Below, piece after piece: positions 22,761-55,370 of a stretch of DNA of 64,000 nucleotides. The stretch covers positions 6,983 to 70,982 of the forward strand of contig JAAOMT010000402.1 in NCBI GenBank assembly GCA_016748015.1, written 5' to 3'. Both the position numbers and the translations under genes were made by a program. The DNA comes from Geosiphon pyriformis uo1 (taxonomy: Eukaryota > Fungi > Glomeromycota). Under the pieces are notes generated by a model that worked only from the letters and a program-made list of their open reading frames with translations, was not told the DNA's origin and ran no database searches. Positions within the stretch are counted from its first letter, which is position 1. Every line of letters starts with the position of its first letter.

Positions 22761-22814
22761 AGAACAAAATAAAATAGATAAATCTTCAAATCTTCAAAGG
22801 AGCTTTACAAATTA

Positions 22815-27228: not shown

Positions 27229-27360
27229 TTACATGATCGAGCATTGGCCAGTACCGCTACCGTCGTCTGGGTCACCGGTTGGTCCTTTAATAGAGCCGTT
27301 ACCGGGAGCAATAATTGAGAGGGGATTAAAGGACGATTGATTGTTGGTTGTTGGTTGCAT
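27229..27360 (-). CDS. CAAX peptide P1, putative lipopeptide pheromone precursor (43 aa, ends CSIM)
   Basis: ATG at 27360 to TAA at 27229; MQPTTNNQSSFNPLSIIAPGNGSIKGPTGDPDDGSGTGQCSIM; TATA at 27462-27468. Confidence 0.85.
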   Translation of the reverse strand: MQPTTNNQSSFNPLSIIAPGNGSIKGPTGDPDDGSGTGQCSIM

Positions 27361-29864
27361 TTTTTCAAATTATTTGATTTACTTTTAACGTTGTTGTTTT
27401 GCTTTTTGTCTTTGTTATTTCAGTGAGATTGAGAGAAAAGAAATTGGGAAAGCATCACCAGTTTTATAGCAAAGCATCATAGCCTTCTCGCTAAGACTTA
27501 ATATTAGAAACAATACTAACTGAATCAGAATGGTAAAATGCAAAAAATGTGACTAATAAGAGGTTGCCTTTATTGTTCTTTTTAATTATTATTTCGATAG
27601 ATGCGTTGTTAAGAAGATTTCGACAAAAAACATATATAGCTAGCATAGTACGATTTTATTTAGTTTGTTAACATAAAATTCCATAAGTAAAACACAATAA
27701 TTATAATGATAGATTTTCAGGAATATTAATAATTCCTTTAAAATATAAAAAATCTATGGCTCTAAAATATAATAAAAAATTGAAAAAAGAAATATCAAAA
27801 ACTCTTTCAAAAAATTGGTTTGCGAATAACTTTTTTTTAAAATGGAACCGTTTTTCTAAACCATTCTTCTTAATTATTACCTCTTGATTATTCCGATATT
27901 TTAGCTATATATTTTACTTATTGAGGGTTTTCATCATCATCATTAATGAATTAAATGGCATACTCAATTGATATAAAGGGAGAATAGAAAACATTACGAA
28001 AAACTAAGAATCCAGCAAAATTGAAAAAGCATGCTTTCAGGTCCAAATTATGATTATAGATATTTTTATTTCTTTAAGTTTATACTTAACGGCAAAGTTT
28101 CTCTAAATGAAGATAAAAATTATGAAAACAAGAACAAATAACTGTTTATCCTTTTAAACTTAATTATTTTTTAGTTCAAAATATACATGAACTTTGGTCA
28201 AATTATTTTAGGGAATAGATTATTAATTTGAAGGTTGTTATTAATTTAAATTCTAATTAATTTAAAAATAAAAGTCATATTTACAGTAAATATAATAATA
28301 TAAATATAATTGAAGGCGTAATAGGTAAATGGTACCTATTAAAAAAAAATATCAAAGAAGACAAAACTTTCCTTGGGCTTAATGAACTATATAATATGAG
28401 AGATACAGAGTGGACTATTTTTAATGCACCTTAAGTTAGTATACAGTATATATAAAATTAGAATATGAATTTCAATAACTTTAAACATTCCATTTGCATT
28501 TAGAACCTTTTTTTATAAAAATATTAAATCAACACATGGTCCGATAAACCTTAATTGAATACAAATGCTTGGGTTTCAAGATTTTTTGTCACAGCTATTG
28601 CAAAACCAAAATTAATTAAATGATTTTCTTTTGTTGTAATATTAATTGTAAACTTTATTTTTTTCTTTCTAATTCAAAATATTAATTTTTAATCAAAATT
28701 AATAATACTTATTTTTATGCATTAATTTTAAAATAAATTTGAATTTTACATAATTATTTACAGAAGCAATTTTTTTACAATTTATTATAATGAGGTTTTT
28801 TCAATTAAGTACTTGTAATTTAGAGATTATGGATTTTAATTTTTTATAAGCAATTTTTGTTAATTTAAAATAATTTTTTTATTATATTTAGACAAAATGT
28901 GATCAAATTGCTATTTAACTACATACAATATATATATGTTACATATTAAGTGCAGCTTATGCACTTTCTACATGTGACAAGTTATTTAGCATAGGCTTCT
29001 TCATTTTTAGTTCAGTAGGCTTTGGCTGAATCAAAGACAATGAGCAATGATTTGCAATGATATCCCCAACAATGGATGATCTTTAATTCAATAAGGAAAG
29101 AAATAGCATAAACAAATATTTTTCGTTGATAATTGCATTTTCAATCTAGTTGGTCAGCAGATAAAAACCAACCAATATTTAATTAAGATTCTAATTTAGA
29201 GACCTAAATACGCTTAAGTGTATTATTTTGGACGGATTTATTGACATGAGCATATGAAGAATAATATGATTTTTTTCCATATAACGCTTTTCCATATTAT
29301 AATAATATTCAAATTTATGATAATGATTTTCGGAAAATAATGATAACTAAAATATTTTATTTTTAGGTGTAAAAATTAACTGTATTTATTCTTGATTATC
29401 TTTTCCTATATAAGCCATAAAATAATTCGATTGATAATCGTTACTTTATCTATCCATTTATAATATCTTCGTCTCGCCCACGCCATGGAAAGTTCGATTT
29501 CAGTAAATTAATTGGGATTTTAGCCTTAAAAATCTTTAATGTTTTCATTTTTGATGATCTACTCAACAATCTTCCCATAAAAATTTTTTTTTTATAAATT
29601 CTGGACCAATCTTCAGAGCACACTTTCACTACTATCATATGTTTTATTAATAAAATTAGTTTAATTCTTAAGAAGGCAAAGTTGCTTAGAAATTAACAAT
29701 AAAAGAAAAATTCGCGTAACTAAATATGACTTTTAATCATTAAGGGCCATCAAAGAGAATAGATACCTAAATTAAGATATTAAATTCTACAACTTTTCTA
29801 TAAAAAGTTTCAATATTTTTGACCATTATAAACCTAATATACCATAATCTTGAAAAGAGCTCGA

Positions 29865-31534
29865 ATGATAAACCTATTTCTCATAATTCTTGTTTTTTTA
29901 CAAAACGATGCGATTCTTGTTTCTTCCTATTTCTCGCCATCTCCTCGGCTGGCCCATATAGCTTCTCTAATTGATAAGAGAATTTATTTCGTTGGCGGAA
30001 CAATAAATTTGATTGATTATGCAATTGATAATGCATACCTAGATCTTCCTCAAAATTTTTCCACTAATTCACCCGCTTTTTATGAACTTGAAACATTACC
30101 CAGATCTCTAAATATATCCTTCACATCAGCTGAGGTGGTAAAAACCAAAAATATAACTGAAGTTATTGTATTTGATGGATATGTAAGTTTCTTAAGTCGA
30201 ACTTTAATTATTAAAATACGTAGTTTTAATGCTCAAAAAAAAATTATTTTTCAAGAGGCTCGATCCCAAGGAGTATTATATTTATGCTTATAAAACAGCT
30301 CAAAATAAGCTCACATGGTTTCCAAATAATGATGCTCAAACGGGAAATCCAGGGGCAAAGAGTTATATTAATACAGTAATTGATAAAAAAGGAAGAATAT
30401 ATTTTTGGGGAGGGACTCGGAATTTTACTCACCTTGAGGATAAAGCCATGTATATATATGATACAAACTCTACATCCTGGACTAAAATTGAGCCAAAGAA
30501 TTCTCCTTCACCAAGGCATTCTTATACTGCCACATTATTACCAGATGGACGCATTATTTTTATTGGTGGGGTTGGCCATTTTTATCCAAATCCAGAAGCA
30601 GATCTGAGTGCGGTAATTTGCAATCTAAAGCTCGAGGGAAATTTATTATGAGTTCTTAAATTTTTGATTTTTTATATAGATCTTAATTTTTAATATCAAT
30701 GGAAAGCCTGAGGATCCATGGTCTTATGAGGTTATTTAATATAAAAATATTAAATTAAATTTTTTTAATTTTGATCACACTAACTTTGGTAAAAAATATA
30801 AACAGTCAACAAAAAGCGTCGTTGCTCTAGGATCTAGGAGGGGACATACAGCAATCCTTGGTAATTTAATAATTGATTGTAAATTTTTATTAATTGAATT
30901 TTTCTTTAATATCATTAAAACTATTTAGCTGCTGATGAATACAATATCATAATTTATGGAGGTCATGACAACTTCACTCGTCCAGCTTATCCTCTCATGG
31001 TTTTAGATACAAAAACATTTACGTGGTCAGTGCCAATTGTAGAATCTCTTCCTAACGATTTATCTGTCCTTTCTTATCATACCGCTACAAGATATCAAAA
31101 CTTGATGATTATTGCATTTGGTAAGTCTTCTTAATGCGATACTTTTAATTTCTGCAATTCAAATTTTATAATAATATGTTTGCAATATAGGGGCTCATAA
31201 TTTGACAAATCAAGTGTATAATTCGAGTAAAGAAATAAGAATATTCGATATATCTAACGGGACTTTTAAGTGGCTACAAAATTATGTAGCTCCATTAACT
31301 GTAATCGACTCTCTACCAAAAAATCCGAAAAATTTAGGACTTATTATTGGAGTCCCTCTTGCTTCAATTGGTTTAATATTTTTGGGATTAGCTATTATAG
31401 TTATTTTATATCGTCGTCGTTTAACAAAGACTAATAATAATGAAGGAAGCACGACAAACAACCAAGTAATCCAAAATTCAGGATTTCATATTAAAGGGAA
31501 CACAACAAACAATCAAGTAATCGAAAATCCATGA
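29865..31534 (+). CDS. Kelch beta-propeller type I membrane protein B
   Basis: Close paralogue of A with the same intron positions; signal peptide, Kelch motifs, TM followed by RRR; no disruption seen. Confidence 0.82.
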
Positions 31535-32737
31535 GTTTAGTCACATTTATCAATGGCAATACCAAATATAATTTTTCAAAAATTTATGAAATTCTTAAAA
31601 AAGACTGAAAAAAAGTATTAAGACTGAATTTACTATTAAGAAACGTAATTAATTATATTTTAATTGACCTTCCGATTGAAACCGCGCTCGGCTAGCTGAG
31701 GGTTAAATGATCGTCAGTTACCCCATATACATGTACCATAAGATTGGTTTCATAAAGATAAATTCACCTCTGAATTCTGTTAAGTTTTTATTATAAACCC
31801 GATTGACAAGGCAAATTCATTTCAATTTAATAACAGCTAAAACGAATACAGCTAAAAATTATATCTAATGAAAAGCTTTAATTTATTTAGGTGAATCATT
31901 TGATTTTTTGCATAGCTATTTTTTGGCCCAATCCATGGTTAGTAAAATTGCTTGGAGTTCAAAATTAGATTCCCATCAACTACATATGAGTGAAAAAACT
32001 TTATCCATTCTAATTAATTCCAAAACCGATGATAAAGAAAAATATGGCAATATACATTTCTTTTAGATGGTTATTTGTAGATGAAAAACAGGAAATATCT
32101 TTTATTTCTTAATAAACACAACGGAAATAGAAATATCTAAAGCATATTTGCTTCAAAAGATAATCTTGAATTCATCAATGGTCACATTTAATTTACATAG
32201 TATAGAATGAAAAAAAATAATCAAACTTAGCGTAAGGCTTTGAGCATTGCTCTTGCTATAATAATCTCACGGTTTTCGAACTCTGCTTTCAGCATGTTAC
32301 TTAATGTAAAGCTGATATACAGTGTATATAGTGTATACATTGTAAAAAACCTTTCAAAAGCTGAATTGTATCATATTCATGTTTAATATTATATGTTATT
32401 CATAAAATGCCTTCTCTAATCCTTCTTTAATGGATGAAAGCCAATATGTCTTTTGATCTCCTCGGGCATTGTTTAAGTATTTTAACAATGCATCTGTCAA
32501 TCAATAATTTAAAAAATAAAAAATTCGGCATATTATTTGTGATTTCCTATCGATTTTCGCTTTTTAACATTCTGTTTAAGTTATTATTGTTTCTAATGAT
32601 AGATGTTATTGTGAAAGCTATGATGTTTTGCTATAAAACTGGAAGTGCTTTCCCAATTTCTTTTCATTCAATCTAACTAAATAACAAAGGGAAAAGCAAA
32701 GCAATAACATTTAAATTAAATCAAATAATTTGAAGAA

Positions 32738-32865
32738 ATGCAACCAACAACCAATAATCAATCCTTCAAGCCCTCTCAATTATCGTTCCCGGTAACGGGT
32801 CTATTAAAGGACCAACCGGTGACCCTGACGACGGTAGTGGTACTGGCCAATGCTCGATCATGTAA
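32738..32865 (+). pseudogene. CAAX peptide P2, frameshifted copy
   Basis: 128 nt instead of 132 (net 4-nt loss near 32762-32772). The 3' part still encodes ..IKGPTGDPDDGSGTGQCSIM* but out of frame with the ATG. TATA at 32632-32638. Confidence 0.8.
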
Positions 32866-33804
32866 AGTCGAATATTATTGGCATTAGCAATTCACCTCTC
32901 CAATCCATCATCGGCAACAATTTATTATCAGCCGAAATTTATAAAAGATATGGCCATTCCTTCTGATTATACTTTTTTAAGAAGAACTTTAGAATTTTAT
33001 CTAAATTAATACAAAACTAAATTTAGACTTTGCACAGGATCATTTAACCTTTAATCATGAATAATTCAATTTTTTTAGAAATATTTCGAATTTTGCAGGC
33101 TATTCTTGTATGGGATCTGGTTGCACAGCATTATTCATTTTCAATGGTGTGTGTAGGTATTTATTCCCGCATCACTTTCATATTCATTTAGATTGAAAAT
33201 AGTAATGACAATGGGAAACATAATATAACTTTAGAGTTAAATTAATTCCACACTATAATACATTTGTCATTGTTAGAACTTTTCTAGTTAGTTTTTTAGT
33301 GAAAATTTTATTTAACAAATAATATGAGAAGGGGTTTAAATTCAAATCCAAAAATAATTATTGAAAGGTCAAACTGATCGGGATCTAAACCTTTAAAAGC
33401 CTTTGTACATGCATAAACAATGATTTTTGATGATCGATTCAATTCATTGATAGCGATCTTTCCATAAAACTAAATTTTCTATAAAACGCTGGGACCAGTC
33501 TACTAAGTATAGCATCACCTTCAAGTATCTATGGTCATATGCTTTATTAATAAAAAAATATTAGAAATAATCTAAAATTAATTTTAATTCTTAAGAAAAG
33601 AATTTTCTAAACCAGAAGGCAAACTTGCTTAAAAATTAGTAAAAGAAACCATTCGCGTAACCAAATATGCTTTACAATCATTAAGTGTTATCAAAGAGAA
33701 TAGATACTTATTAAAAAATTCAGTTTTACAACTTTTTTATAAAAAGCTTCAACCTTTTTGACCATTATTAAACCTAATATACCATTTTCTTGAAAAAAGG
33801 TCAA

Positions 33805-35527
33805 ATGATAAACCTATTTCTTATCATTCTTGTTTTATTACAAAACAATGCGATCCTTGTATCGTCCAATTTCACGCCATCCCCTCGGTGGGGCCATACA
33901 GCTTCTCTAATTGATAACAGAATTTATTTGGTTAGCGGAGGGATATTTCATAGTTATGCAGTTGATAACGCATACTTGGATCTATCTCAAAATTTCTCCA
34001 CTGATTCGCCCGCGTTTTATGAATTTGAGACATTACCCAAAATCTTTAAACGTGTCTTACGCATCAGCAGAGATAGTAAAAACTAAAGATAAAACTGAAG
34101 TAATTGTATTTGCGGGAGATGTAAGTTTCTTAAGTTTAGAACTTTATTTGTTAAAATACGCAGTTTTGATGCTCAAAAGATTTTTTTTAAAGTCGATAGA
34201 TCCAAAGGAGTATATTTACACTTATAAATTCGCTCAAAATAAGCTCACCTGGTTTAGAAATAGTGATAATAAGTCGGGAAATTCAGAGGGCAAGGACAGA
34301 GATTGATACAGTTATTGATGAAAAAGGAAAAATATATTTTTGGGGAGGAATTCGAAATAACGTTTATATGAATAAAAAAATGTATATATATGATACAAAC
34401 TCTACATCCTGGACTCAAATCACACCATTGAATTGTCCTTTACCAAGGTTTTCTTATACTGCCACATTATTACCAGATGGACGCATTATTTATATTGGTG
34501 GATCTAGTGGTTCTTATCCAGATCCAGAAGCAGATCTGAGTGCGGTAATTTGCAATCTAAAGCTCGAGGGAAATTTATTATGAGTTCTTAAATTTTTGAT
34601 TTTTTATATAGATCTTAATTTTTAATATCAATGGAAAGCCTGAGGATCCATGGTCTTATGAGGTTATTTAATATAAAAATATTAAATTAAATTTTTTTAA
34701 TTTTGATGACACTAACTTTGGGTTAAAAATATAAACAGTCAGCAAAAAGCGTCGTTGCTCTAGGATCTAGGAGGGGACATACAGCAATCCTTGGTAATTT
34801 AATAATTGATTGTAAATTTTTATTAATTGAATTTTTCTTTAATATCATTAAAACTATTTAGCTGCTGATGAATACAATATCATAATTTATGGAGGTCATG
34901 ACAACTTCACTCGTCCAGCTTATCCTCTCATGGTTTTAGATACAAAAACATTTACGTGGTCAGTGCCAATTGTAGAATCTCTTCCTAACAATTTATCTGT
35001 CCTTTCTTATCATACCGCTACAAGATATCAAAACTTGATGATTATTGCATTTGGTAAGTCTGCTTATTGCGATACTTTTAATTTCCGCAATTCAAATCTT
35101 ATAATAATATATTTGCAATATAGGGGCTCATAACTTGACAGATCAAGTGTATAATCCGAGTAAAGAAATAAGAATATTCGATATATCTAACGGGACTTTT
35201 AAGTGGCTACAAAATTATGTAGCTCCATTAATGCTCACGAAAATCACCAAAGCTCCTACACCTTCCACTGAAATTAACGTAACTCAAACAGCTACCGCTA
35301 CCGCTGTACTAAAAAACTCGAAAAATTCAGGACTTATTATTGGAGTCTCTATTGGTTCAATTATTTTAATATTTTTAGGATTAGCTATTATAGTTATTTT
35401 ATATCGTCGTCGTTTAACAAAGACTAATAATAATGAAGGAAGCACGACAAACAACCAATTAATCCAAAATCCAGGATTTCATATTCAAGGGAACACAACA
35501 AACAACCAAGTAATCGAAAATCCATGA
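33805..35527 (+). pseudogene. Kelch type I membrane protein C, frameshifted
   Basis: Paralogue of A and B with +1 frameshifts near 34040 and 34290; the ORF track splits at both sites. Confidence 0.72.
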
Positions 35528-37222
35528 GTTTACCCACATTTATCAATGGCAGTACCAAATGTAATTTTTCAAAAAATTTATGAAATTCTTAAAAAGACAC
35601 TGGAAAAAATATTAAGACGGCTTTTGAATTTATTATTAAGAAACGTAATTAATTATATTTTAATTGACCTACCGATTGAAACCGCTCTCGGCTAGCTGAA
35701 GGTTAAAAGATGGTCAGTTACCCATAAAGATATACTTTAAGCTTAGCATATTTATGAAAAATCTTTTAAAGAGAAAAGCAGCAGATTGTAATATCAAAGT
35801 TTATACTTGTTGAGTTATTGCTTTATAAATTATCAGTCTATTGATGGTGGTTGATTAGCCTGAATCTCGAAAAAAAAAAAAAAAAAATTACCGATTTTAG
35901 GTTTTTATAATAAACTATTGTCAGATATCTATTTATACGCATATAATTGTGAAATTAATTAACTTTCTACAAATCTATTGAAAAATTCTTCATTTGTTTA
36001 TTTAGGCTAAAGATAGCATCTTAAAAGATTAAAAACAGCCCCATAATTTATCATGGGTTTACTTTGTCGCAAATGTAGAATTAATATTTAAAAGCCTATA
36101 AAATTTTCCCACATTATAATGATTTTGAATATAATTTGTTTTATCGTATTTTAAGAAATTACAAATCATCTTAAAAAAATCCAAATTTCTAACATAGAAA
36201 AATTAATCTATTAATAAAGTTCTTTTCAAATAATATAAGACATTTGATATTAATAATTTCAGAGTTATCTTTATAAGTTTATACTTTTTATTTCGAAATA
36301 AATTCACTTATAAATCGATCATAATTGCGTATTAGTTTTTATTTTATTAGATATATCGATAAAAATATATTAATAAAATAAATGTGACTTGTCTTTTGAT
36401 TGTATTAAACCAAAAATAAAGTTATTAAGTTTATTATTAACAGCAAGTCAAAGTAATTTAAAATTTTTAAAATAATATCTATTTATTTGATTTAATTTCA
36501 ACTTAGAAACTGTGATTAGAAATTCATGTTATATAAATTCAGTTTTTATTAGTTTGTGTAAAATAATTTTTTTTAGTTTAATTCCAATTAGTTTTTGCCA
36601 ATTTAATAAAACTTTCCCTTTAAAAATTAGACCACTGAAAATTATTAAAATAAAATGAGAATTTTAAGATACATTTTTTTAAAATATCTTAATATCTAAT
36701 AATTATTTATTTTATTGTATATTCTTTATTCAAAAATTAAATTATAATAAAAATAATTTTTTTTGTAATAGTTTTCTTTACTATTTAAAAATTATTTATT
36801 AAAATTATTTCATTTTTTGATTAATTCGCGATCCACATCTAATGTACAGTAGATGTGTTGTACGATAATAATTGGTGGTTGGATTACATCGTGAATGGCA
36901 AGGAAATAAAATAAAAATAAAAAATAATTTATTAGATAAGAATAAAAATAATTTTTTTTGCGAACTATATATATAAAGTTTATTAAATAAATATTATTTA
37001 AATTTGAAGTAAATTAATGTCATGATAGTTTAAAAAATTTATGTTTTTTTGATTTTTCATTTATTTGATTAAAATTTTTTGAAAAGGTAGTTTTTTTTTA
37101 AATAAGGGTCAATCATCAACTAATATCTTTTAAACCAAACAGCTTTCAATTTTTGTTGTAAATTAACTTATTTTATTGGGATTTTAATTTAATCAAAAAA
37201 TTAATTTTGAAAAAGTCTAAGG

Positions 37223-39522
37223 TTAGGAGCTATTACTAATATCTGATTTATTATCACTTTCACACTCTTCCTCAAGAGCATTAGTAATATTAACGTTTCT
37301 GTCAAATTCTTCTCCCTTATCACTCTTTCCGACAACTCTGTTAATTCTACTATTCTCGCTAGATTGATCATTATTATTTCTCTCATTAGCATTATGATCC
37401 TCATCCTCAACATTTTCAAAATGAACCCGAGCACGTTGCATCGCTTCGAAATATCTAATCGGTAAATGATTTTGGAAAAATGAAGGTAAAATTCGTTCCA
37501 TCCATATCAAAGGACTCCTAGCAGGATGTTCGTGAAGTGGTTTAGTACGAAAAACGTCTTTTCTACTTGACCATAATTTACCATTTTTCATAAATTTTAT
37601 TCCTGTTTCATTTTCCGTGTCAACTTCTTCTCCTTTCAATGTATTCCATCCAAAAATTGAAGCTAAAGAATAGTCACTCCTTTTTCGTTCCACAATAACC
37701 GGTTCAACCGCAGTATCAAAAGAATCGCAAGTCGATACTGGTTTCCTACCATTCTGGAAAAATCTTACTCCTTCACCAACATGCGCATAATTTAACAGAT
37801 TCATTTTATTAACGAGACGTCTGATACCAGGATCTTCATAGCCGGGCGGTAATTTTGTGATGATATCGGTATCATTGATCACTCGCCATAAAGTATTTGG
37901 GCGGTCGAAAGGATCATTTGAAACGGCTGAAAAATGAGCCGCGAAATCTGCGTCACCGATAGCCGGGGTACCGAAGAGATATCCGTCTCGTAAAATGCAA
38001 TTCTCGCCAAGATCTAATGGGGAACGAAGGAGGCGAGAGTAGAATAGAGTTCCAAGGGCGGCACCTAATGAATGACCAGTTACCCAGAGATTTATTGGTT
38101 GATCAAGACTAAAGCTGGAAGAGTTGTTATTTGATGTTGAAGCTGATGAAGACTGCCTAGAACGAATTTGTAAAGCTTTAGCGCGAATTGCTTTTATGAT
38201 TGTTATATATGGACTTGCTGAATGACCTCTTGAGGTTTTGTGGCCTCCGTCTGGAAAGAGGGAGGTGTAAAAACCTTCATGAATTTCCCCAAATACATAT
38301 CCTCTTTGGTAGTGAAACATAAATGAATGAGGGGTGTAAATGTTTGATGGATGTTGAATAATAAAAATTTAAACGATCTTTTGAAATCATCATTATTCAA
38401 AAACTCTTTTTAAATTACCTCGCATCAATGCGTTGAATCATCGAATCTACCAAGAAATCCTCGAAATCAGTTGGTGTCGTTCCTTTAAATACGACCACTA
38501 TAAATCGATGTTCATATGACCAAAACATTCCAGCGAATGGTCCACCCAGCGAATTTAATTCTGATAAAGAGGTAAATTCTAATCCCCATTTTTGAGATTG
38601 TTCACGTATACGAAGTTCGCTTTCATACAACTGTCGATTCACATCTTGATATGCTTCCGAAGTTCGTTCTAATTTATTTTTAGCGAGATCTGTAATCTTT
38701 TTATGAGCATTACGAACCTTCATATCATCACGTTCATAGACAATCGCGGACATTAGAAGGAGAGTTTCGGCAATATCTAAATTAAAGGGTCGAGCTTTTT
38801 TCGTGCTGGTTATATCAAATTTTGTAGCTTGATGGTGGTATTTTTGTGTAGTCGGTAGGGGTTGTTCTAACCCTAGAAGACCATCATTTATAATTTCAGA
38901 GACTTCTTCGGAAAATAATCTTGGATCCCCTAGGTAAAAGAAAATTAAAGTTATGTGAGTATTGGTGAATCATCAATTCAATTTTTGAGTTTAAATTTTA
39001 AATCACTTATTAGTGACAAATTAAAAATTTCCCATGTTTATACTCACACCAATTAACCGGACTCAAACCGTCACCCCATTTCTTCGAGATTCCATTTAAC
39101 ACATTTCCCAATCCACAATAAAAAGATAGTTTTAATGATAATTCGACAACTACCAGCGAAATGACAATAGTAGGGAACACGGTCATAATCAAAATAAAAT
39201 TCACGGGATGAAAAAGTGGCATTGACCAATCAAATAATATTGTGAATAGTAAATTTCTTATAGCGCGATGAACATAAACCATATAAGTTAAAGAGGGAAA
39301 AAGTGTTGGAAGAGAAGTAAATGATTGTGTAGCTGCTGATTTATTTTTATGCGTTTCTGTTAAATCGCGAAAATGGGGATTAGCATCTTCATTATAACTC
39401 TTGATATAGTCACTAATAGATGGGGGAGACGTTTTGAGGTGGAATTGGGAGAGTGGATTCGATTTTTGATCAGGTACAGAGTTATTTGTGAATTGAAGGA
39501 AAGTTGATTTTTGAGTTGGCAT
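37223..39522 (-). CDS. Lipase class 3 / alpha-beta hydrolase with N-terminal membrane segments and intact catalytic motif
   Basis: Three-exon structure; VVVFKGT, IHEGFY, WVTGHSLG, FGTP..GD, RVINDTDIITKLP, C-terminal His (QNHLP). Confidence 0.88.
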
Positions 39523-42500: not shown

Positions 42501-42760
42501 TTGCATTTAACAAAAATTTTTCAGTACCTTAATGAAAATTTTTTATTATGCATGAAATTATAAGATTTTAGAATAATTCCAGTTCATTGTAACAGTTACA
42601 AATTTTTCTCATTTATAGTTTTTTCTATATCAGAGGGAAATTAAATTCAATTAAATTAAACTAGATTAAATTAAGTAAAGTAATACAAGTTTTTTGGATT
42701 AAGATCAAAGAAATAATATTAGAAACCTAATGTCATGTTTAAAAATTTTGTGAATCGGAA

Positions 42761-44372
42761 TCAAGACCAATCCTCTTAAATATAAAAAAAAAAAGTGTTA
42801 AAATTTTTAAATGATAAATTTTATAAAAATTTTCGGTTAATTTCTTACCTTCAGGAAGATAGACAAATTCTGTTAAAATTGACATTAAGAGAAGAAAGAA
42901 AAAAAGTTTAAATAAGTTAATCCATAAAAATTTTCAAAATGAATAAAGTTAATCAATAAAAATCTTCAAAAATAAAAAAAAAAACTAAACCTTTTAAAAA
43001 ATTAATCATTCGGAAAGTTAAAAGTCGACTTGAATAAACTGCTTTTGGATGAATATTGGGTGGTGATTTAGCTGTTTCCAATGTTTCTTTTACGAGTTTA
43101 TCTGCTTCGGAAAACTGTAAATACTCAGTTGTAGAAGAGTAATTATTAAAACGTCCAAGATCATAAAGTCTCAATCTAACTTGAGTAACAGCAGGACGAT
43201 TCGATGGAATACTATCCCAACATTCTTCTATTAGTTCAGCAAGACAAGGTGGAATATGAAAAGTGATTTCAGGTCTAATACCATTTAAAATATCTATGAC
43301 AAGTTTGGAGTCATGAGGACGATCATGAAAAGGAGGCTTTCCTGTTGCCAATTCCCATAATAACATTCCGAAACTATAAATATCACCAGCTTTATCGAAC
43401 TCTTCACCTCGTAAAACTTCAGGTGGTATGTATGGAATTACTCCAAATATTCCTTTTTCTGCTAATTTCTTGTTAGCAGGTTGACATAATCCGAGGTCTG
43501 AAACATTTGCAAATTCTCCATTGGCCAGGCGATAAATTAGAATGTTACCAGAGTGTAGGTCACGATGAACTAAACCAGCAGAATGAACTGTGATAAGACC
43601 TGACGCAATTCCTGAAGCTATTCTCAACCTATCAGACCAATAGCTAGAATAAAAATTTGATGATAGATAATCTCGCATATCTCCATGTTCGGCAAATTCC
43701 ATTACAAATCCGTAATCAAGTGTTTCCGGGTTTTGAGTGATCCCAATAACATCAGAAATACCAATCACAAATTCGGGGTTATTTGCCATTATAGAACTTT
43801 GAATATTTATCTATTAAGAGACACCCCCCCCCCCGTAAAAATTTTTATCAAGTTCAAAAATTAAAAAAATATAAAAAGATCAAATTTTCAATGAAAAATT
43901 ACTCAATTACCTTTTTAAAGAGTTCATCCCCCTGTCTTGAATCATTCATAAATTTTACTGCAACATTTATCGATCCATTTCTTTTAAATTTCGTTTCACC
44001 ATGGTGCTTTAAAGTCTCGAAATCAATCATTCCATCAATCCATGTTGCTTTATAAAAAATACCAAAACCTCCTTGGGCAATATAGGAAATATCTGTCAAA
44101 CGTTCATATGGAATCCATTCATAGTGATGAATCTCATTGTAGAGGTTGGGATTATAAATTGGATTTTTGATTATCTCGTCAATTGCTTGATTTCCACTTG
44201 AAAAATCTTTATATAGATTTTGAAAAATTATGATTTTACATGTCGTGCAATCATTGTATCTATTATATCTCATGCTCAATTTGCATTTTTTACATTTATT
44301 ACAATTATGAGGCTTTTCTGGTCGAGTTCTCTTGCATCGAAATTTTTTTATTGATGAAATCAATAAACCCAT
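42761..44372 (-). CDS. Tyrosine-kinase-like protein kinase with an N-terminal Cys-rich region
   Basis: CxxC pairs, WIPY, IAQGGFG, VAVK, HRDLHSGN, DLG, YIPPE, DIYSFG; short 3' exons inferred from GT-AG sites. Confidence 0.85.
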
Positions 44373-45823
44373 ATTCGGTATAAGAAACGTGGATGAAATG
44401 TGTTTGTCGATGTTTATGAATATTTTTGTTTTTCAATACACTTTCTCTTAAGTTAGGAATGAGAGTTTTTAAAAAAGTTTGGGAACGAGATAAAAATGAC
44501 ATCAACTTTTTTACGATTTGGGAAATCTGATGTTTTAATCGGTTTTTATTTATCGATAAACATTTCTATTTTGATGATCATACGTTACAATCGGAATATT
44601 TGGGCATCGAACAATGTTAATTTAAAGTTTTCCATTGTTTTGATAGACTTTTCCATGGAACAATGCCCCCGCTGTTCTGATCGGATCGAACATTAATCAG
44701 AGACTTTTTGTAAATATTCAAGATCTTTTAACATCAAAATAATTTATATATTAATATAAAATAATAATTTTTGAAAACTTTTGTATTTTTATAAAATGTC
44801 TGAAATCAATGTCAAATGAAATAAATTTTTTTCATTTTTCTTGGACTTTGATTTTTTAAGCTTATAAACAAACTTATGACATAAACATAAAAGTTTCAAG
44901 TATCAAAGGCATTAATAACTTTCTATATAAATATATATATAACATTTCTAAAAATTTACAATAAAAACAATTCCAGCATCACAATTCAATAAATAGGTCT
45001 TCTTATCACATACCAAGTAAAAGAGTCAATAACCTTTTTTAATTCACTAACAAAATAAATGATCATTGTTTTTAATTAAAAACTATTTGTTTTGTTGTAT
45101 TATAACAAATAGGTTTTGATTCAATCCAAAAATTTTGATTTATTCCTTGATAAATGAACCAAAATATTTTGAAATTATCAAAAGGATTCTATTATCATTT
45201 AAAAGTGTACACAATGTAAAATTTCAAGAGAATTTATTAGCAGTAAATGTCTCATTATTATTATTCAAAATGTTCGAACTTTCATTCTTTAAATTGCAAG
45301 TTAAACTGGGAATATTAAATTAATTGGCTTTCATTTGATTTTATCTAAAGCCAAAAAAATAAGGCTTAATACTAAGAAGCAAACAATTTAGTAGCCTTTC
45401 TATTGAATAAATGACGGAAACCTGTATTATTCTTGAAAACACAAAATATTGTGATCCCTAAGATTTCTTTTGTTCACCAAACTCAATACTAGAAACCAAG
45501 TCAAATATAACGACAATAAAAAATTTAGTAAACAACATTGCACTAATGCTAAATATATATAATTAAGATTCAAAATAATATCTATATACTTTGGTTGTAA
45601 ATAGTTTTAATAACTTTTCTTTTGTTTTTCATTATTAAAAGTTAAATAATCATGTAAAGAGCCTAAATTAGTATTATATTAATTTAGATAAAATTCTAAA
45701 GTTCCCCTTGAAAAAGTATAAATTAGAAGGAATGGCTATGACTTTTATAAATTTCGGTCGATAATAAATTGTTGACGGTGATGGATTGAAGAGGAGAATT
45801 ATTATTGTGGATAAAATGTAACT

Positions 45824-45955
45824 TTACATAATCGAGCATTGGCCGGTACCACTACCGTCGTCTGGGTCACCGGTTGGTCCTTTAATAGACCCGTTACCCG
45901 GAGCGATAATTGAGAGGGGATTAAAGGACGATTGATTGTTGGTTGTTGGTTGCAT
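45824..45955 (-). CDS. CAAX peptide P3, putative pheromone precursor (same peptide as P1)
   Basis: 132-nt ORF ending tgc tcg att atg taa; TATA at 46057-46063. Confidence 0.85.
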   Translation of the reverse strand: MQPTTNNQSSFNPLSIIAPGNGSIKGPTGDPDDGSGTGQCSIM

Positions 45956-48028
45956 TTTTTCAAATTATTTGATTTACTTTTAACGTTATTGTTTTGCTTT
46001 TTGTCTTTGTTATTTCAGTGAGATTGAGGGAAAAGAAATTGGGAAAGCACCACCAGTTTTATAGCAAAACATCATAGTCTTCACGCTAAAATTAAGTATT
46101 AGAAACAATACTAAATAAATCAGAATAATAAAATGCAAAAAATGTGACTAATAATAAGTTGCGTTTATTGTTCTTTTTAATCATTATTTCGATGGATGCA
46201 TTGTTAAGCTATCTCAACAATGCCCCAAATATTTAAAACAAAAAATTATTTATTTGATCATCAGTCAAAAAAGGTTGGAGATGGAGCATTATTCTTTGAT
46301 ATCATACCCCCTATTTAATAAAACTATAGTACGGTAATGGTACAAATTCAGCCATTAAGGAGATTGCCTATGTGTTTATCTTTAGTTATGCATTAATTCA
46401 TAAAACCGAAAACAGGATTTTCTTAAGAACAATGCTAAAAGCATTGCTTTAATATTTGATTATTCAGTTCCTAATAATCACTTGACGCTATGTATCACTA
46501 AAATTCAAATAGATTTCATTCTTGATAAATTAAGATTGTGTTTTTGGGAGCAAAATATCCTTATATTCCTAATTTTTTAGATGCAAATAAGAGAGTTTGC
46601 TATTTTTCTGGTGTAAAACAGCAGTCTATGAAGAAATGAATTTACCGTATTGTTCTTTGTTGGTCAAGTTTGGAAATTAATCGGAATTGATAAATTTTAA
46701 TTAATTAATTAATGTCAACTACTAACCATTTTGCTACATATGAATTTTGAGCTGAGAATACTTATACGGAAATTAATCTTGAAAATTACAAACTTTTTAT
46801 TAGATCTAATTCTGTGGAACCACAGTATGTGTAAATATTTTTAAATCATTACTACCAAGTATTTGATGGTAAATTTTGCTTGTAAAATCAAGATTAAGTT
46901 TAGCAAACAGGGAAAGCCGGAGAATTGAATAGGTTTTTTCCAGTTTGGAATTTGCTAACTAGCTTAATAAACTGCAAGATGAATTGAACTATTTTTCTCA
47001 GAACAAAATCTTTAAATGAAAAAATAAATATCTTTCTATTTAAATTTAAAAATTACTCAATTATTTTGTAAATTTCAATAATTCCTATGAAATTTTTTGA
47101 GAATTTATTCAATTCAATTTTTCTGGCTAAATCGATACTTAGTTTCCAAATTTCCAAATTTTTGGCTTTGAGCATTATTAAATAAAGGTCAATGTCACTT
47201 CAAAATCTTCTCTCTTTAAATATCTCACTTTTAAAGGTAGTAACTTTGTATTGTGATTATTTTGATCAAGCAATATTTTTGAATAAAAAATTGTTTCATA
47301 ATGAAGATGCCTATTGTAAGTTTTATTCAAATGGCTACTCTTGAAATCTTCAAACAAATTATACATAAGCTAGTAATAAAATTATTTTATTCACATCTCT
47401 TGCAAAAATATTACATGACTATTTCCCAGTTTTAGGCAATCAGTATCGTATAAAAATTTATTTTATAACATTTTATTTGTATTGATATTAAAATCTTCGC
47501 CCAATTTTTGAATTGGAACTAATCATAAAATAACTTTTTGTATAACCCAAAATTAAATAATTTACTGAATCAAAACACAGTATAAAAGTTTGTTTCAATC
47601 ATTAAAATATTGTTTCTGCCATTTTAAGAAATTATCCTTTAATTTCAAGCCATGGTTCAAAGATATTTATAGAAGACCTGAATAACTTTCTTTATTGGTG
47701 ATAAAATTTTTGAAAAAAAACTTGCTTTTTCCAAATTAGCTATTTTTTGTGCTATTTTTTATTGGTAGATTAATATTATATTATATAAAAACAAGTCATG
47801 ATATAAAATTATTTAAAAATCTAGTCAAAATACATTGCCCTAAATGCTAATATATAATTAAGATTAAAACAAGGAACGAGAAATTCTCCTAATAATGTAT
47901 ATATTTGAAAGGTTAGGCAACTATGTAAAGAGTTTAAATTCGGCAATAAACCGGAGGTAACGGCCTTAATTCGGTTGATAGTAATTCGGTGACGGTGAGG
48001 AGGATCTTTAATGCGACTAATATCGAAT

Positions 48029-48160
48029 TTACATAATTGAGCATTGACCGGTACCGCTACCATCATCTGGATCACCGGTTGGTCCTTTAATAGAGCCATT
48101 GCCCGGAGCGATAATTGAGAGGGGATTAAAGGAAGATTGATTATTAGTTGTTGGTTGCAT
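48029..48160 (-). CDS. CAAX peptide P4, putative pheromone precursor (same peptide as P1)
   Basis: 132-nt ORF; 14 nucleotide differences from P1, all synonymous; TATA at 48262-48268. Confidence 0.85.
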   Translation of the reverse strand: MQPTTNNQSSFNPLSIIAPGNGSIKGPTGDPDDGSGTGQCSIM

Positions 48161-50722
48161 TTCTTCAAATTGTTTGATTTACTTTAAATGTTATTGCTTT
48201 GATTTTTTCTCTTTGTTATTTAGTTAGATTGAATGAAAAAAATTTGGGAAAGCACTCCCAATTTTATAGCAAAACATCATAGCCTTCACGCTAACATCTA
48301 TCATCAGAAACAATAGTAACTTAAACACAATGTTAAAAATGCAAAATCGATAGAAAATCATAAATAATATGTTGAATTTATTGTTTTTTAGATTATTGAT
48401 TGACAGATGCATTGTTAAGATATTTAAACAATGCTCAAAAGATCTAAAAAGCATATTGCGTTTCAAAATTCATTATCAATTAAAGAAGGATTAGAGAAGG
48501 CATTTTATTCATAACATGTAATATTAAACATACATACGATACAATTCAGCCATTGAGAAGGTTTTTTACCATGTATACATTATATATTAGCTTTACATTA
48601 ATTAACATGCTGAAACCAGAGTTCGAAAAACGTGATATTTTTGCAAGAGTAATGCTCAAAGCCTTGCACTAAGTTTGATTATTCAATTTTTCTACCCTAT
48701 GTAAATTAAATTTGACCATTGATGATTCAAAATTCTCTTTTTGAAGCAAATATGCTTTAGATATTTCTATTTTCATTGTGTTTATTCAGAAATAAAAGAT
48801 ATTTCCTGTTTTCCATCTACAAATAACCATCTATAAGAAATATATATCGTCATATTTTTCTTTATCATTCAATTTTGGAATTCATTGGAATGGATAAAAT
48901 TTTTTCATTCATACGTAGTTGATGGGAATATAATATTGGACTCCAAGCAATTTTACTAATCAAGGATTGGACCAAAAAATAGCTATGCAAAAAATCAATT
49001 GATTTACTTAAATAAATTAAAGCTTTTCATTAGATATGATTTTCAGCTGTATTTATTTTTTTAGAAATATTTATAAAGATAATTTTGCAGGCTACTCTTG
49101 TGATGATTGTTACCATATGGCAATAATATTTCATGTTTTGTGTTTGGTCATTGATATAGGTTTGAGAATGTTCTTGCTTGAAGTTAATTTCATTTGCAAA
49201 ATGAAGATTAATTATAATAAACAGGCGAATGAGGATGTATAAATTTTTAGTTTATAAAGCTAGCATCAAATTACAAGGATAAATTGCCTTAATTTTCTGA
49301 ATTTTCTGTAGGGAATCAAATAAAACTTAATAAATTGTAGTTTCAAATACCTAAAAAGGCTATGAAAATACAAACATTAGATTTTTGTTTAACAATAATA
49401 AATATAATAGATTATTTTATATTTTAAAATAATTATTATTTATTCTTGAAAAGTAATTAAAATTTTTAATAATATACAGTTTTTTAGATATTGTTTCTAA
49501 AATTGCAAAAATTTTATTATTGGGATTGAATATATCTTCAATTTTAATCAGACTAATATTATTTTTTTATTAATCATATGATTTTGGTTGAAACTGCATT
49601 TGTTTTTAAGCCTTATTATATTGTTAATTTTCAATTTTCTGTTTCTAACAATAAATTGATAAACTTCCACATAAAATAATATATGTAAATCAATTTTAAA
49701 AGTTTTTGAGTAAATGATTAAAAAAACTTAAATTTAGATTTGACTTCTTTGTTAATAACATAATTGTAAATTAGCACATAAATTCTAAATATTTGTTTAT
49801 TATTTCATATATTACAACCAATTTCATTATATTTTAAATCAATAATCTGTTTTTTGCGTGTTGTATCTATATGTTTTTGAAAAATCGTTTATTTGGCAAC
49901 TTTTAAGATACATTAAAGTAAGAAAAAGTAGCCAAGTATAAATGCCAATGACATTGAAAAATTTTATATTTTTTATTAATATGTATGGCATATCCAATTA
50001 GGGTGATTCAGGAAATAAATAATTCAAAACGTTTCTTTAAAACAAATTTCATAAATTGTTATTGTTACCAAGGAAACTAGAAGGCTTTTTAATTTGCATT
50101 AAAGAAATTTCAATTCCAATCTCTAAAATATTTTTTGGTTCGGAATATTCAAAAAATACTTCTAGTCATAAATTTCAAATTCAAAGTTCTTTTATTTTTT
50201 TTCCTATCACACAAGAATAGAACAATCAATATTTTTATTATTTTCTGTAAAAAATTCTCATTAATACAAAGGTGCCGAGAATTATGAATTGGTGGACACC
50301 TGATATATAATGTACAAATGTAAAAAACCTTCTCAATTGCGGGATTTGTACCGTATTTATGTTTAATATTATATGCTATTAAAAACTATGCCTTCTCTAA
50401 TTTTTCTTTAACTGATAATCAATTTTGAAAGCTAATATGCTTTCAGATCTTTTGGGGCATTTTTTAATATCTTAAAACTGCATCTGTCAATAAATAAATG
50501 AAAGAACAATAAATTTAACAAATTATTTGTAATTTTCTATCGAGTTTTGCTTTTTAAACTTATGATCAAGTTATTATTGTTTCTAATTTTTGATGTTAGG
50601 ATTAAACTGTCTTGCTATAAAACTAAAAGTGCTTCCCCAATTTCTTTTCATTCAATCTAACTAAAATAACAAAGAGAAAAGCAAAACAATAACATTTAAA
50701 GTAAATCAAATAATTTGAAGAA

Positions 50723-50854
50723 ATGCAACAAACAACCAATGATCAATCTTCCTTTAATTTTCTCTCAATTATCACTCCAGGTAATGCCTCTATTAAAGGA
50801 CCAACCGGTGACCCAGACGATGGTAGCGGTACCCGTCAATGCTCAATTATGTAA
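50723..50854 (+). CDS. CAAX peptide P5, variant precursor (P3Q, N7D, P13F, A18T, G22A, G38R)
   Basis: MQQTTNDQSSFNFLSIITPGNASIKGPTGDPDDGSGTRQCSIM*; TATA at 50616-50622. Confidence 0.8.
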   Translation: MQQTTNDQSSFNFLSIITPGNASIKGPTGDPDDGSGTRQCSIM

Positions 50855-52843
50855 AGTCAGTTATTATTGACATTAGTCATCCTCCTCACCGTTACCAAAT
50901 TACTATCAACCGAGATTTGCAAAGCTTAAGGCTGTTACCTCCGTTTTATGTTGAATTTGAACCCTTTACATGATTACCTAGCCTTCAAATATACATGTCA
51001 TTAGGGGAATTTCTCTTTCACTGTTTTAATCTTAATTATACATTAGCATTTAGTGCAATGTAGTTTACAATATTATTAAATAATTTTATATTATGACTTG
51101 TTTTATAAAATATAATTAATCTACGAAATAGATATAAAATAATCCCGTATCAAACTTAATCAAAATAACACAAAAAAGATATCTACTCTGGAAAAAGGCA
51201 AATATTTTTTTCATTAACTTTTTTTGGATTTATTAACAATAAATAAAGCTATTCAGGCTTTCTATAAATATCTTTTAACTATAGCTTGAAATTCAAAGGT
51301 ATTTTCTCAATATGGCAAAAACAATGTTTTTTTGATTGAAACAAACTTTTATACTGTGTTTTAATTTAGTATATCTATTATGTAGAATTTTTAATCGAAA
51401 TTGATTTATTTATTTTGAAGTTTTCGTAAAAAAATCTGCGGCATTTTATCATTGTAGAAAAGTTTCCTCAACAAGAAAGATAGTTTCGGTATGCGTGATA
51501 AAAGATATTGTACAGACAAATCAAACTTGGTAGAGAAATAGACTGTTATATAGATATTGTTTACCTAAAACTAGTAAATACTCATGTAATATCTTTGCAA
51601 AAAATTTGAATAAAGTGATTCGATTACTAGCTTAGGTATAATTTTTTGAACATTTCACGAAAGAGCTATTTGAATGAAACCTACAATTGGTATCTTCTGT
51701 ATGAAACCACTTTTTTTAATTTTTCAACATCAACAACATTGCATGATCAAAATAATTACAATAGAATGTTCTCACCTTTAAAGTTGAGATATTTAAAAAG
51801 AGAAGATTTTGAAATGACACTGACCTTATTTAATAATGATCAAACCCAGAAATATAAAGATTTAAAAATTTAGTATTTACAGACTAAGAATTTAATAGGT
51901 ATCATTAATATTTACAAAATAATTAAGTAATTTTTAAATTTAACTAGAAAAATTTTCATTTATTTATTTAAAGATTTTGGACATCTATATATTTTATTTT
52001 GTTCTTAAAAAAATAGATTAATTCATCTTTGGAATTTGCTAACTAGCTTAATAAAGAGCAAAGTGGAAAACCTATTCAATTCCTCGGCTTGCCCTGTTTA
52101 CTAAGCCTAATCTTTGATATTTGCAAGCAAAATTAACCATCACAGGATCAGATCAAATGAAAAATTTAAGGTTCTCAAAATTAGCTTTCTGCACAAGTAT
52201 TTGAATTAAAAAACTTATCATTTCTGATTAATTTCTAAACTTAACTAATAAAGGACAATATGATAAATTCATTTTTTCATAGACTGGTGTTTTACACTAG
52301 GAAAATAGCAAATCTTTTATTTTTCATCTAAAAATTAGAAATATAAGGATATTTTGCTCCCAAAAACACAATCTTAATTTATCAAGAATGAAATCTATTT
52401 GAATTTTAGTGATACATAGCGTCAAGTGATTATTAGGAACTGAATAATCAAATATTAAAGCAATGCTTTTAGCATTGTTCTTAAGAAAATCCTGTTTTCG
52501 GTTTTATGAATTAATGCATAACTAAAGATAAACACATAGACAATCTCCTTAATGGCTGAATTTGTACCATTACCGTACCGTAGTTTTATTAAATAGGGGG
52601 TATGATATCAAAGAATAATGCTCCATCTCCAACCTTTTTTGACTGATGATCAAATAAATAATTTTTTGTTTTAAATATTTGGGGCATTGTTGAGATAGCT
52701 TAACAATGCATCTATCCAAATAATGATTAAAAAGAACAATAAATGCAACCTCTTATTAGTCACATTTTTTGCATTTTATCATTCTGATTCATTTAGTATT
52801 GTTTCTAATACTTAATGTTAGCGTGAAGACTATGATGTTTTGC

Positions 52844-52850
52844 TATAAAA
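52844..52850 (+). promoter_or_regulatory. TATA box of P6, conserved in all six CAAX-peptide copies
   Basis: gcTATAAAA about 105 nt upstream of the ATG in every copy. Confidence 0.7.
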
Positions 52851-52951
52851 CTGGTGGTGCTTTCCCAATTTCTTTTCCCTCAAGCTCACTGAAATAACAA
52901 AGACAAAAAGCAAAACAATAACGTTAAAAGTAAATCAAATAATTTGAAAAA

Positions 52952-53083
52952 ATGCAACCAACAACCAACAATCAATCGTCCTTTAATCCCCTCTCAATTA
53001 TCGCTCCGGGTAATGGCTCTATTAAAGGACCAACCGGTGACCCTGACGACGGTAGCGGTACTGGCCAATGCTCGATCATGTAA
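52952..53083 (+). CDS. CAAX peptide P6, putative pheromone precursor (same peptide as P1)
   Basis: 132-nt ORF from atgcaacca to tgctcgatcatgtaa. Confidence 0.85.
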   Translation: MQPTTNNQSSFNPLSIIAPGNGSIKGPTGDPDDGSGTGQCSIM

Positions 53084-53766
53084 AGTCGAATATTATTGGC
53101 ATTAGCAATTCACCTCTCCAAATTATCATCGTCAACAATTTATTATCAGCCGAAATTTATAAAAGATATGGCCATTCCTTCTGATTTATACTTTTTCAAG
53201 AGGAACTTTAGAATTTTATCTAAATTAATATAAAACTAAATTTAGACTTTGCACAGGATCATTTAACCTTTAATCATGAATAACAAAAGAAAAGTCATTA
53301 GGACTATTCACAGCCAAAGTGTATAGATATTATTTCGAATTTTAATTATATATTTGTATTAATGTGATGTTGTTTGCTGAATTTTTTATTGCCGTTATAT
53401 TGGACTTGCTTTCTAGTAAATTGCTTAATAATACAATAAATAATTATAATAATAGAAAAAAATTATAGGCTTTTAAATATTAAACTTGTATTTGCGATAA
53501 AGATAACTCATAATAAATTGAAATAATTGTCACTGTTTTAAACTTTTGAGATGATATCTTTCGCCATAAAACAAAAATTTTTGGTAGATTTATACACTTA
53601 CTGTCTTGTAAGAAAAAATTGGAAAAATATGAATCTACTAAGATTACGTTTGGTTTAACCATTTTTGGTAAGTTTTATGACAGTAAAATAGAAACAGAAT
53701 ATTAGGTAAGTCGCTGAGCTCTAAAAACGTATTAACTAATAGTTTTTTTTAAAACTTGTTTTTGAA

Positions 53767-54847
53767 ATGCCGACTTCAAAGCAAGAAATGCAAAGTCGTA
53801 TTACATTTTTGGAAGCAAGAAATATGAAAGGCGAAAAAAATACAGAATAAAACGAATATACCCCTTTCTACAATCTATAATATCCTCAAAAAACTCAAAA
53901 AAAAGGAACAATAAAGCATGCGAGTGGTAATGGTCAGCCAAGAAAGATTATGGGAAATTCTTTGAAAGTATTAGGGCAGATTCTTCGTAGAGATTCCTTA
54001 GTTTCGTCTAGATATTTAGCAATAAAGTTTACTAAGAAAAGAATAAATGTTTCTCATGTTACTATTCAAAACCCTATATCTAATCTTAATTATAAAAAAA
54101 GTCTTCCTAGAGCAACACCAATGCTGACTGAAGAGCATAAGCGAAAACGTGTAAAATGGGCCAAAAACACCTGAATTATTATTGGAAAAGAACAGTTTTT
54201 ACTGATAAAACGTCTTTTCAACTTTTTCAAAACATAGTAAAATGTTGGCATAAAGGTACTCGACTAATTTGTTTTATGCCTAAAGATCAAACAAAAATTC
54301 TCGCATGGGGGGGTTTCTACGAAAAAGGAAAAACTAGTTTATTCTGTTTTGTTCAAATAATGAATGCTCAATTTTATATAGATATTCTTCGTAACCACTT
54401 ACCTGAAATTAGAGCAATGCTGGGGGATAATTGGCGATTCCAACAAGATAATAACCGCAAGAATACTAGCAAGCTTGCCAAAGAGTTTATTACTGAGAAT
54501 ACAACTGATTTGTTGGGGTGGCCATCTAATAGTCCCGACTTAAACCCAATAGAAACCTTTGAGCTATTGTTAAAAAGAATGTAGAAAAAAGAATGTGTTA
54601 AAATCGTAGTGAATTAGAGAGATTTATTGGGGAAGAGTGGCAAGATATTTCTGAATCTATCTTAATTGGGTTAGTAGGATCAATAAGTGAAATGATAATT
54701 GAGACAAATGGTGAAAGAATTTCCTATTAATTTTTTTTAATAAAATTATAATGGTATTTGACTTTCTAATAAAAGTTGTAATTTGGTACATTAGTTAAGA
54801 CATAGTGATTATTTTTATATTTCCGATTTTTTTTTTACCAGACTGTA
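53767..54847 (+). mobile_element. Tc1/mariner (DD34E) transposon, decayed transposase at 53767-54730
   Basis: HTH region (IPLSTIYNILKK), LTEEHKRKRVKWAK, VFTD, FQQDN, WPSNSPDLNPIE; several frameshifts; probable right end ACTGTA at 54842-54847; left TIR not recognised. Confidence 0.85.
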
Positions 54848-55370
54848 TTTTTGAGATTCAGATTAATCAACCACCATAAATAAACTGAAATTTATAAAAC
54901 AAAATCAGCAAGTGTGAATTTTAACATTACAATCTGCTACTTTCCTCTTTAAAGATTTTTCAAACATAAAATACTGAAAATTTGTGCGCGAAGTGGTCAA
55001 AAAGATACATAGAATTATTGTCATTGGTTTTAAAAATAGTAAATATCTGTCAAAACGGAATTCGTTTTAGCTGTTATTAAATTGAAATTTATTTGCCTTG
55101 TCAATCAGGTTTATAATAAAAACTTAACAGAATTCAGAGGTCAATTTATCTTTATGAAACCCATCTTATGGTACATGTATATGGGGTAATTGACCATCTT
55201 TTAACCTTAAGCTAGCGAGTGCAGTTTCAACCGGAATGCCAATTTATAATTAATTACGTTTCTTAATAGTAATTTCAAAGCCGTCTTGAAAATTGTTTTT
55301 CAGTTTCTTTCTAAGAATTTCATATAATTACATTAAGATTAACATTTTGTACTGTCATTGATAAATGTGG

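Follow-up and report, generated by a model that had tools for sequence, protein, structure and literature searches.

A dispersed family of CaaX-terminated micro-genes in Geosiphon pyriformis and Ambispora: candidate precursors of an a-factor-type lipopeptide signal

We analyzed a 64-kb stretch of the genome of Geosiphon pyriformis (contig JAAOMT010000402.1, positions 6,983 to 70,982; the window, in whose numbering all positions below are given unless another locus is named), which contains a set of very small genes first noticed in a preliminary description made from the DNA letters alone. Geosiphon pyriformis belongs to the order Archaeosporales and is a relative of the arbuscular mycorrhizal (AM) fungi, so the guess in that description that the DNA came from Glomeromycota was right. 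It had also placed six paralogous 43-codon units in the window, one of them frameshifted, each preceded by a conserved TATA box and encoding a peptide that ends in a Cys-a-a-X (CaaX) motif, CSIM, followed by a stop codon. All six were found at those positions and on those strands, five intact and one frameshifted, and the TATA box, CTATAAAA, is present 103-122 nt 5' of the ATG in each Geosiphon copy, the distance being ~108 nt for those in the window. The peptide genes and their associated features are as follows; the HMG-type sites are described further below.

22804-23134 (+): promoter-only relic of a seventh copy, with a degenerate TATA box and the coding part absent.
27229-27360 (-): copy 1, intact, ending CSIM; TATA box 27462-27469; HMG-type sites 27509-27514 and 27572-27577; inverted site pair degraded.
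32738-32865 (+): copy 2, a frameshifted pseudogene with 4 nt missing near codons 9-12; TATA box 32631-32638.
45487-53418 (no strand): imperfect inverted duplication of ~8 kb that contains copies 3-6; outer arms 92% and inner arms 74-80% identical.
45824-45955 (-): copy 3, intact; TATA box 46057-46064; HMG-type sites 46104-46109 and 46167-46172; inverted pair 46200-46221.
48029-48160 (-): copy 4, intact; TATA box 48262-48269; HMG-type sites 48309-48314 and 48380-48385; inverted pair 48411-48432.
50723-50854 (+): copy 5, frame intact and CSIM kept; TATA box 50615-50622; inverted pair broken.
52686-52850 (+): promoter of copy 6, with inverted HMG-type pair 52686-52707, sites 52735-52740 and 52798-52803, and TATA box 52843-52850.
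52952-53083 (+): copy 6, an intact 43-codon CSIM gene and the query copy for our searches.

Copies 1, 3, 4 and 6 encode an identical 43-residue peptide ending in CSIM and a stop. The pseudogene, copy 2, retains HMG-type sites (32468-32489 and 32586-32591) as well as its TATA box. Copy 5 is probably decaying under relaxed selection, based on the fact that it differs from its sister, copy 4, by six amino acid changes as against five silent ones and that its inverted site pair is broken. No additional coding copies beyond the six were detected in the window by tBLASTn, and no tRNA or Rfam families were found in the region. Assembly gaps (N runs) are located at 341-360, 3951-4132, and 62388-62687, and touch none of the peptide genes. 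A canonical CaaX end was present in only one of 568 other open reading frames (ORFs) of 30-60 codons in the fetched DNA; since, in addition, the copies differ from one another almost only silently, the CaaX end is not a chance product of AT-rich DNA.

The units had been described as unannotated, which is only partly correct. Four of the six window copies fall in NCBI gene models that either begin with the peptide or contain it, and that lose the CaaX through splicing; all public models containing the peptide likewise remove the stop codon and CaaX by splicing, after which they append unrelated tails or fuse the peptide to adjoining kinase, lipase, Kelch or membrane genes. It is for this reason that the family went unnoticed. 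If such models were correct, each unit would be the first exon of a longer spliced gene, with the GT at the Met/stop junction as donor and the CaaX incidental. A G-T-(A/G)-A sequence is indeed present at the junction of last codon and stop in every copy, and the splice donors of the public models lie at this junction or a few codons 5' of it. However, the modelled downstream exons are mutually unrelated, the donors differ between models, and clusters of copies cease to resemble one another right at the stop codon or close to it. Moreover, position +5 of the supposed donor is A in 25 of 26 copies, as opposed to the GTAAGT of clear Kelch-gene donors, and the Cys-a-a-X is conserved over two families of fungi. 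We consider a first-exon origin very unlikely.

Eighteen further intact copies were identified on six other G. pyriformis contigs, at loci reached via mis-annotated protein matches, bringing the family to 23 intact copies and one pseudogene on seven contigs, which is a lower bound. Among 19 intact Geosiphon copies the silent divergence (dS) is ~0.70 and the replacement divergence (dN) 0.024, a dN/dS of 0.034. The identity between contigs at codon positions 1, 2, and 3 is 97, 98, and 68%, respectively (binomial P ~4e-16), and residues 22-43 are unchanged in 21 of the 23 intact copies. Orthologous genes are present in Ambispora leptoticha, with five copies in 14 kb, and in A. gerdemannii, with at least two. 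The CaaX micro-genes are therefore real, multicopy and under purifying selection in two families of Archaeosporales.

The Geosiphon copies cluster by contig in a tree, and the flanks they have in common lack a fixed boundary, extending from tens of bases to >900; a comparison of these flanks revealed no common ends or terminal repeats around the copies. We conclude, because of the clustering and the absence of a shared boundary, that the family has spread by local duplication with occasional dispersal and decay, and not as a transposon. An alternative in which the units are passengers of a transposon or repeat, or haplotype or assembly duplicates, with no function of their own, could draw on the dispersal of the copies, on a DDE_3 transposase-like ORF 1 kb from copy 6, and on two identical copies at locus L011, but it is largely refuted by the flank analyses and by a dS of this size with almost no replacement changes, and we regard it as extremely improbable. 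Scattering of the copies as part of a transposon had been named beforehand as an observation that would speak against a signaling role: the copies are scattered, over seven contigs, and selection is evident where transposon ends are not.

Two members of the family deserve separate mention. The identical copies at L011:4205-4336 (-) and L011:10001-10132 (+) are inverted relative to each other and their flanks are also identical, which could reflect a very recent inverted duplication or an assembly duplicate. The copy at L009:10001-10132 is divergent, with four changes in the part of the peptide predicted to be released on maturation, some of them toward Ambispora residues, and has fewer promoter sites; it could represent a second specificity or a decaying copy.

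The Ambispora peptides are 59-74% identical to those of Geosiphon and end in CVIM, CVIV or CIIW, immediately followed by a TAA or TGA stop. Invariant across the two genera are an N-x-Q-S-x-F-N-P block, Ile17, Asn21, G-P-T, Asp30, Gln39-Cys40, and Ile42, and the most variable positions between species are the eight residues preceding Gln39. The uniformity of residues 22-43 within Geosiphon, together with species differences just before the Cys, is the pattern that would be expected of a species-specific ligand. Two A. gerdemannii copies (L006:8307-8435 and L008:10001-10129) lack the uniformity of the Geosiphon set: their residues before the Cys differ, and they possibly represent two ligand types in one genome. 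An A. leptoticha copy of only 39 residues (L007:3469-3588), which ends in CIIW and is missing three residues after the Asn, is probably degenerate.

Profile searches with two alignments, which cover only called proteins of 24-75 residues, returned matches in Geosiphon and Ambispora only. The searches beyond Archaeosporales depend on called proteins and exact words, and for this reason the lack of relatives outside the order does not mean that they are absent. Metagenome scans with a protein pattern detected no relative, and the only match to a DNA pattern (L012) was a chance match within a prokaryote-like gene. Matches to coral and other repeat proteins (P0012, P0016, and P0019) were rejected as low-complexity chance matches, and the peptide has no match in Pfam, PDB or the ESM Atlas. 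Pheromones of distant fungi are usually not alignable and escape homology search (10.1101/2021.09.28.462209). An Ig-like membrane gene lies beside copies at both Geosiphon L009 and Ambispora L005, with just 28% identity, and was rejected as evidence of synteny.

Upstream of the coding region, the best-conserved islands are a ATTGTTTC site and an inverted pair, ATTGTT-N10-AACAAT, and these are retained across contigs although the adjacent DNA aligns poorly. Nine locus representatives, three of them from Ambispora, have 29 ATTGTT/AACAAT sites, compared to 4.7 expected from dinucleotide shuffling (at most 14 in any of 1000 shuffles), while random AT-rich windows have a mean of 0.55 such sites and reach four in 0.3% of cases. 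This excess represents retention of sites and not their independent gain, as the promoters share ancestry. Experiments have identified ATTGTT as the site of the HMG box of Fusarium MAT1-2-1, and it is also the site of SRY/SOX (PMC4559316). Neither the yeast Ste12 pheromone response element nor the exact Ste11 TR box is enriched in the promoters. Fungal pheromone genes are typically under the control of HMG-box factors (Prf1, Ste11, and Mat2). The HMG-type sites are no proof of a sexual role, since AM fungi have many HMG genes, in hugely expanded families whose roles are possibly non-sexual (PMC4771724).

The peptide itself has the features of an a-factor-type precursor. It is 43 residues long with a polar N-terminus and neither a signal peptide, as had been noted previously, nor a hydrophobic leader. 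A published sieve for a-factors selects multicopy products of <100 residues with an Asn 5-20 residues before the Cys (10.1101/2021.09.28.462209), and the peptide passes it by virtue of the invariant Asn21, a predicted cleavage site after which 19 residues remain, near the upper limit. The genes are multicopy and the predicted mature part is conserved within the species, as in a-factors. The C-terminal CaaX is conserved as CSIM or CVIM and agrees with a-factor at the level of the motif, based on yeast reporters with other substrates: yeast a-factor with a CSIM end supports mating at the wild-type level and depends on Rce1 instead of Ste24 for its cleavage, and the CVIM motif likewise undergoes prenylation and cleavage there (PMC9231725).

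There is no second anchor, in the form of a polybasic or palmitoylation site, and the net charge is negative, which would be more in keeping with export than with anchoring in a membrane. These features bear on the alternative that the genes encode an abundant intracellular prenylated microprotein, in which the whole 40-residue farnesylated chain would stay on membranes or bind a partner and the many copies would provide bulk. Such a product would be compatible with conservation over the full length, N-terminal part included, with the very high copy number and with the lack of linkage to a receptor gene. It is, however, less compatible with the missing anchor and the acidic C-terminal half, with the absence of a fold or family match, and with HMG-type promoter sites and an a-factor-like layout, and we consider it unlikely.

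A candidate receptor has been reported. In a survey of 1,357 fungi, G. pyriformis is listed with one STE3-class (class 2) and no STE2-class (class 1) receptor; STE3-class receptors number one in Rhizophagus, one in Endogone and two in Gigaspora margarita, and neither Rhizopus nor Mortierella alpina has any (PMC12842992 Table S3). Class D receptors have also been found to be absent in Rhizopus (PMC5705715). STE3 and STE6 orthologs have been known from Glomeromycota since 2013, when Halary et al. described them in Rhizophagus and sought a peptide gene, none being detectable (PMC3834313); the present family provides a concrete candidate. Kelch-transmembrane genes were considered as a dedicated receptor and rejected, as they flank copies only in the window and at L011 and belong to an expanded family.

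An exported lipopeptide might instead have a target other than Ste3, as a signal or surface-active agent directed at the plant or Nostoc partner or at endobacteria, or used against competing organisms. To our knowledge, all characterized fungal exported CaaX peptides are Ste3 ligands, which counts against this proposal. The copy number, which implies a high dose of one peptide type, would agree with such a target, as would the expansion of HMG-box genes in AM fungi, given that it is possibly non-sexual and HMG sites need not mean sex (PMC4771724). The family is, however, retained in Ambispora, which has plant hosts and not Nostoc, and an orphan STE3 is reported in G. pyriformis itself (PMC12842992). 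We judge a target other than Ste3 to be improbable.

The copies have an ORF, evidence of selection, a CaaX motif, and promoter motifs, and by analogy with yeast we think it probable that each encodes, in a single exon, the precursor of an a-factor-type signal that is farnesylated, exported and recognized by Ste3. By the same analogy, HMG-box factors would activate the peptide genes, farnesyltransferase would prenylate Cys40, Rce1 would cut off the SIM residues, and a Ste14-type enzyme would methylate the product. Removal of the N-terminal part would yield 19 residues if the cut follows the invariant Asn21 and 15 if it follows Lys25. A Ste6-type ATP-binding cassette (ABC) transporter would then export the lipopeptide for detection by a Ste3-class G protein-coupled receptor, and the many dispersed copies would serve to increase dose. 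Whether the outcome would be mate recognition or autocrine or hyphal-fusion signaling is about evenly balanced. The a-factor-type assignment made in the preliminary description is thus partly supported, by size, the lack of a signal peptide, a CaaX conserved across genera, an Asn 19 residues before the Cys, multiple copies, purifying selection, HMG-type sites and the reported STE3-class receptor, and not by sequence homology to a known pheromone family; of the two proteases it named for the maturation of known pheromones, Rce1 and not Ste24 agrees with the yeast data on CSIM cleavage (PMC9231725).

Several observations weigh against an a-factor-type signal. The mature peptide is predicted to be long and acidic and to be hydrophilic as well, with a grand average of hydropathy (GRAVY) of about -1 compared to +0.7 for a-factor. 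There are at least 24 copies, compared to the 1-3 usual in yeasts (10.1101/2021.09.28.462209), and a single peptide type dominates. Between genera, the N-terminal part is conserved at least as well as the C-terminal part. The peptide has no sequence match to any known pheromone family in Pfam or PDB, and our searches found no relatives in Glomerales or Diversisporales, which also have STE3. Lastly, the genes called up to ~10 kb from the fetched copies and the scanned window ORFs include no STE3 domain. Based on this last result and the one dominant peptide, these genes do not form a basidiomycete-style pheromone/receptor (P/R) mating-type locus, and the earlier term locus is not appropriate: the cluster in the window is part of a multi-locus family spread over at least seven contigs.

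Among known systems, a-factor of Saccharomyces cerevisiae (MFA1/MFA2) is similar in being made as a short single-exon precursor with no signal peptide, an N-terminal extension and a CaaX, from more than one gene. The Geosiphon precursor differs in its length (43 residues versus 36), in its acidic, hydrophilic predicted mature part of 15-19 residues (versus 12 hydrophobic residues), in its copy number (at least 24 versus 2), and in having no Pfam match. Asn21, Ile24-Lys25-Gly26, and Asp30-Pro31 occupy the same positions in Mfa1, which is cut between N21 and Y22 (PMC2134810). This positional resemblance has a P of ~0.002 in one comparison made after the fact, and A. gerdemannii L006 does not share it (P 0.09), so that we treat it as a curiosity that may at most provide a lead.

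The pheromones of basidiomycetes (Ustilago Mfa, Cryptococcus MF, tremerogens, and rhodotorucine A) are also derived from CaaX precursors of ~40 residues, in fungi with a receptor system of STE3 only and no STE2, as listed for Geosiphon in the survey (PMC12842992). Their genes are under HMG-box control (Prf1 and Mat2), a further likeness to the Geosiphon promoters, and several of the mature peptides are polar and rich in Gly, Asn, Asp, and Pro. In contrast to the Geosiphon copies, which are dispersed, nearly all identical and in no case seen beside STE3, the basidiomycete genes adjoin the receptor in the P/R locus and have distinct alleles. M-factor of Schizosaccharomyces pombe (mfm1-3) has an extension of 30-32 residues, a CaaX and several unlinked copies, and its genes are under HMG-box control (Ste11/Mat1-Mc). 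It differs in its nine-residue mature peptide, its introns and its three copies, and the exact Ste11 TR box is not enriched in the Geosiphon promoters.

The a-factor-like precursors of filamentous ascomycetes (Sordariomycetes and a putative Leotiomycete family) are 45-64 residues long, with a Ser/Thr-rich start and CaaX ends that include CSIM (in some putative Leotiomycete precursors), features shared with the Geosiphon peptide, and are usually missed by annotation and unlinked to the receptor (PMC10569646). Unlike the Geosiphon peptide they have a GY motif, are usually encoded by a single copy, and are paired with alpha-factor/Ste2, a system that Geosiphon lacks according to the receptor survey (PMC12842992). 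Fusarium oxysporum, which has no known sex, makes autocrine use of a-factor-type signaling (PMC13308352). The Geosiphon family stands apart from ordinary a-factor precursors in its high number of dispersed copies, its single peptide type and the length and acidity of its predicted mature part.

None of the papers in the library that we searched reports a peptide pheromone from Glomeromycota. The Glomeromycota are the textbook "ancient asexuals." We lean slightly toward the view that this family is the first case of a peptide pheromone from outside Dikarya and that it represents the class of natural ligands for Ste3 of Glomeromycota, an orphan receptor. An HMG-controlled lipopeptide-Ste3 system would in that case be older than the divergence of Dikarya and still in use in a lineage without observed sex, at an unusually high dose from >20 dispersed copies. 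A defined farnesyl peptide of 15-19 residues can be synthesized, which would make cryptic sex or self/non-self recognition directly testable, and the combination of CaaX-stop, multiple copies and TATA plus HMG sites provides a homology-free recipe by which the corresponding genes of Rhizophagus and Gigaspora could be sought.

Interleaved with the peptide genes in the window are four paralogous genes for proteins with a signal peptide, Kelch repeats and a single transmembrane segment (19590-21380, 29865-31500, and 33805-35527 on the + strand, and 55342-56955 on the - strand), with DNA that is 78-88% identical; the gene at 33.8 kb appears to be frameshifted near its start. A DDE_3 (Tc1/mariner-type) transposase fragment is located at 54156-54584 (+), 3' of copy 6. 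A 108-bp tandem array of Sel1-like repeats with a kinase, a gene type typical of Glomeromycota, is duplicated 55 kb apart (1927-3870 and 58285-58730; 4133-4864 and 59561-60258). At least five class-3 lipase genes are clustered in the window (7440-7655, 11456-11656, 14782-15036, 16447-16653, and 37223-38320), and lipase genes also adjoin peptide copies at L010 and L011.

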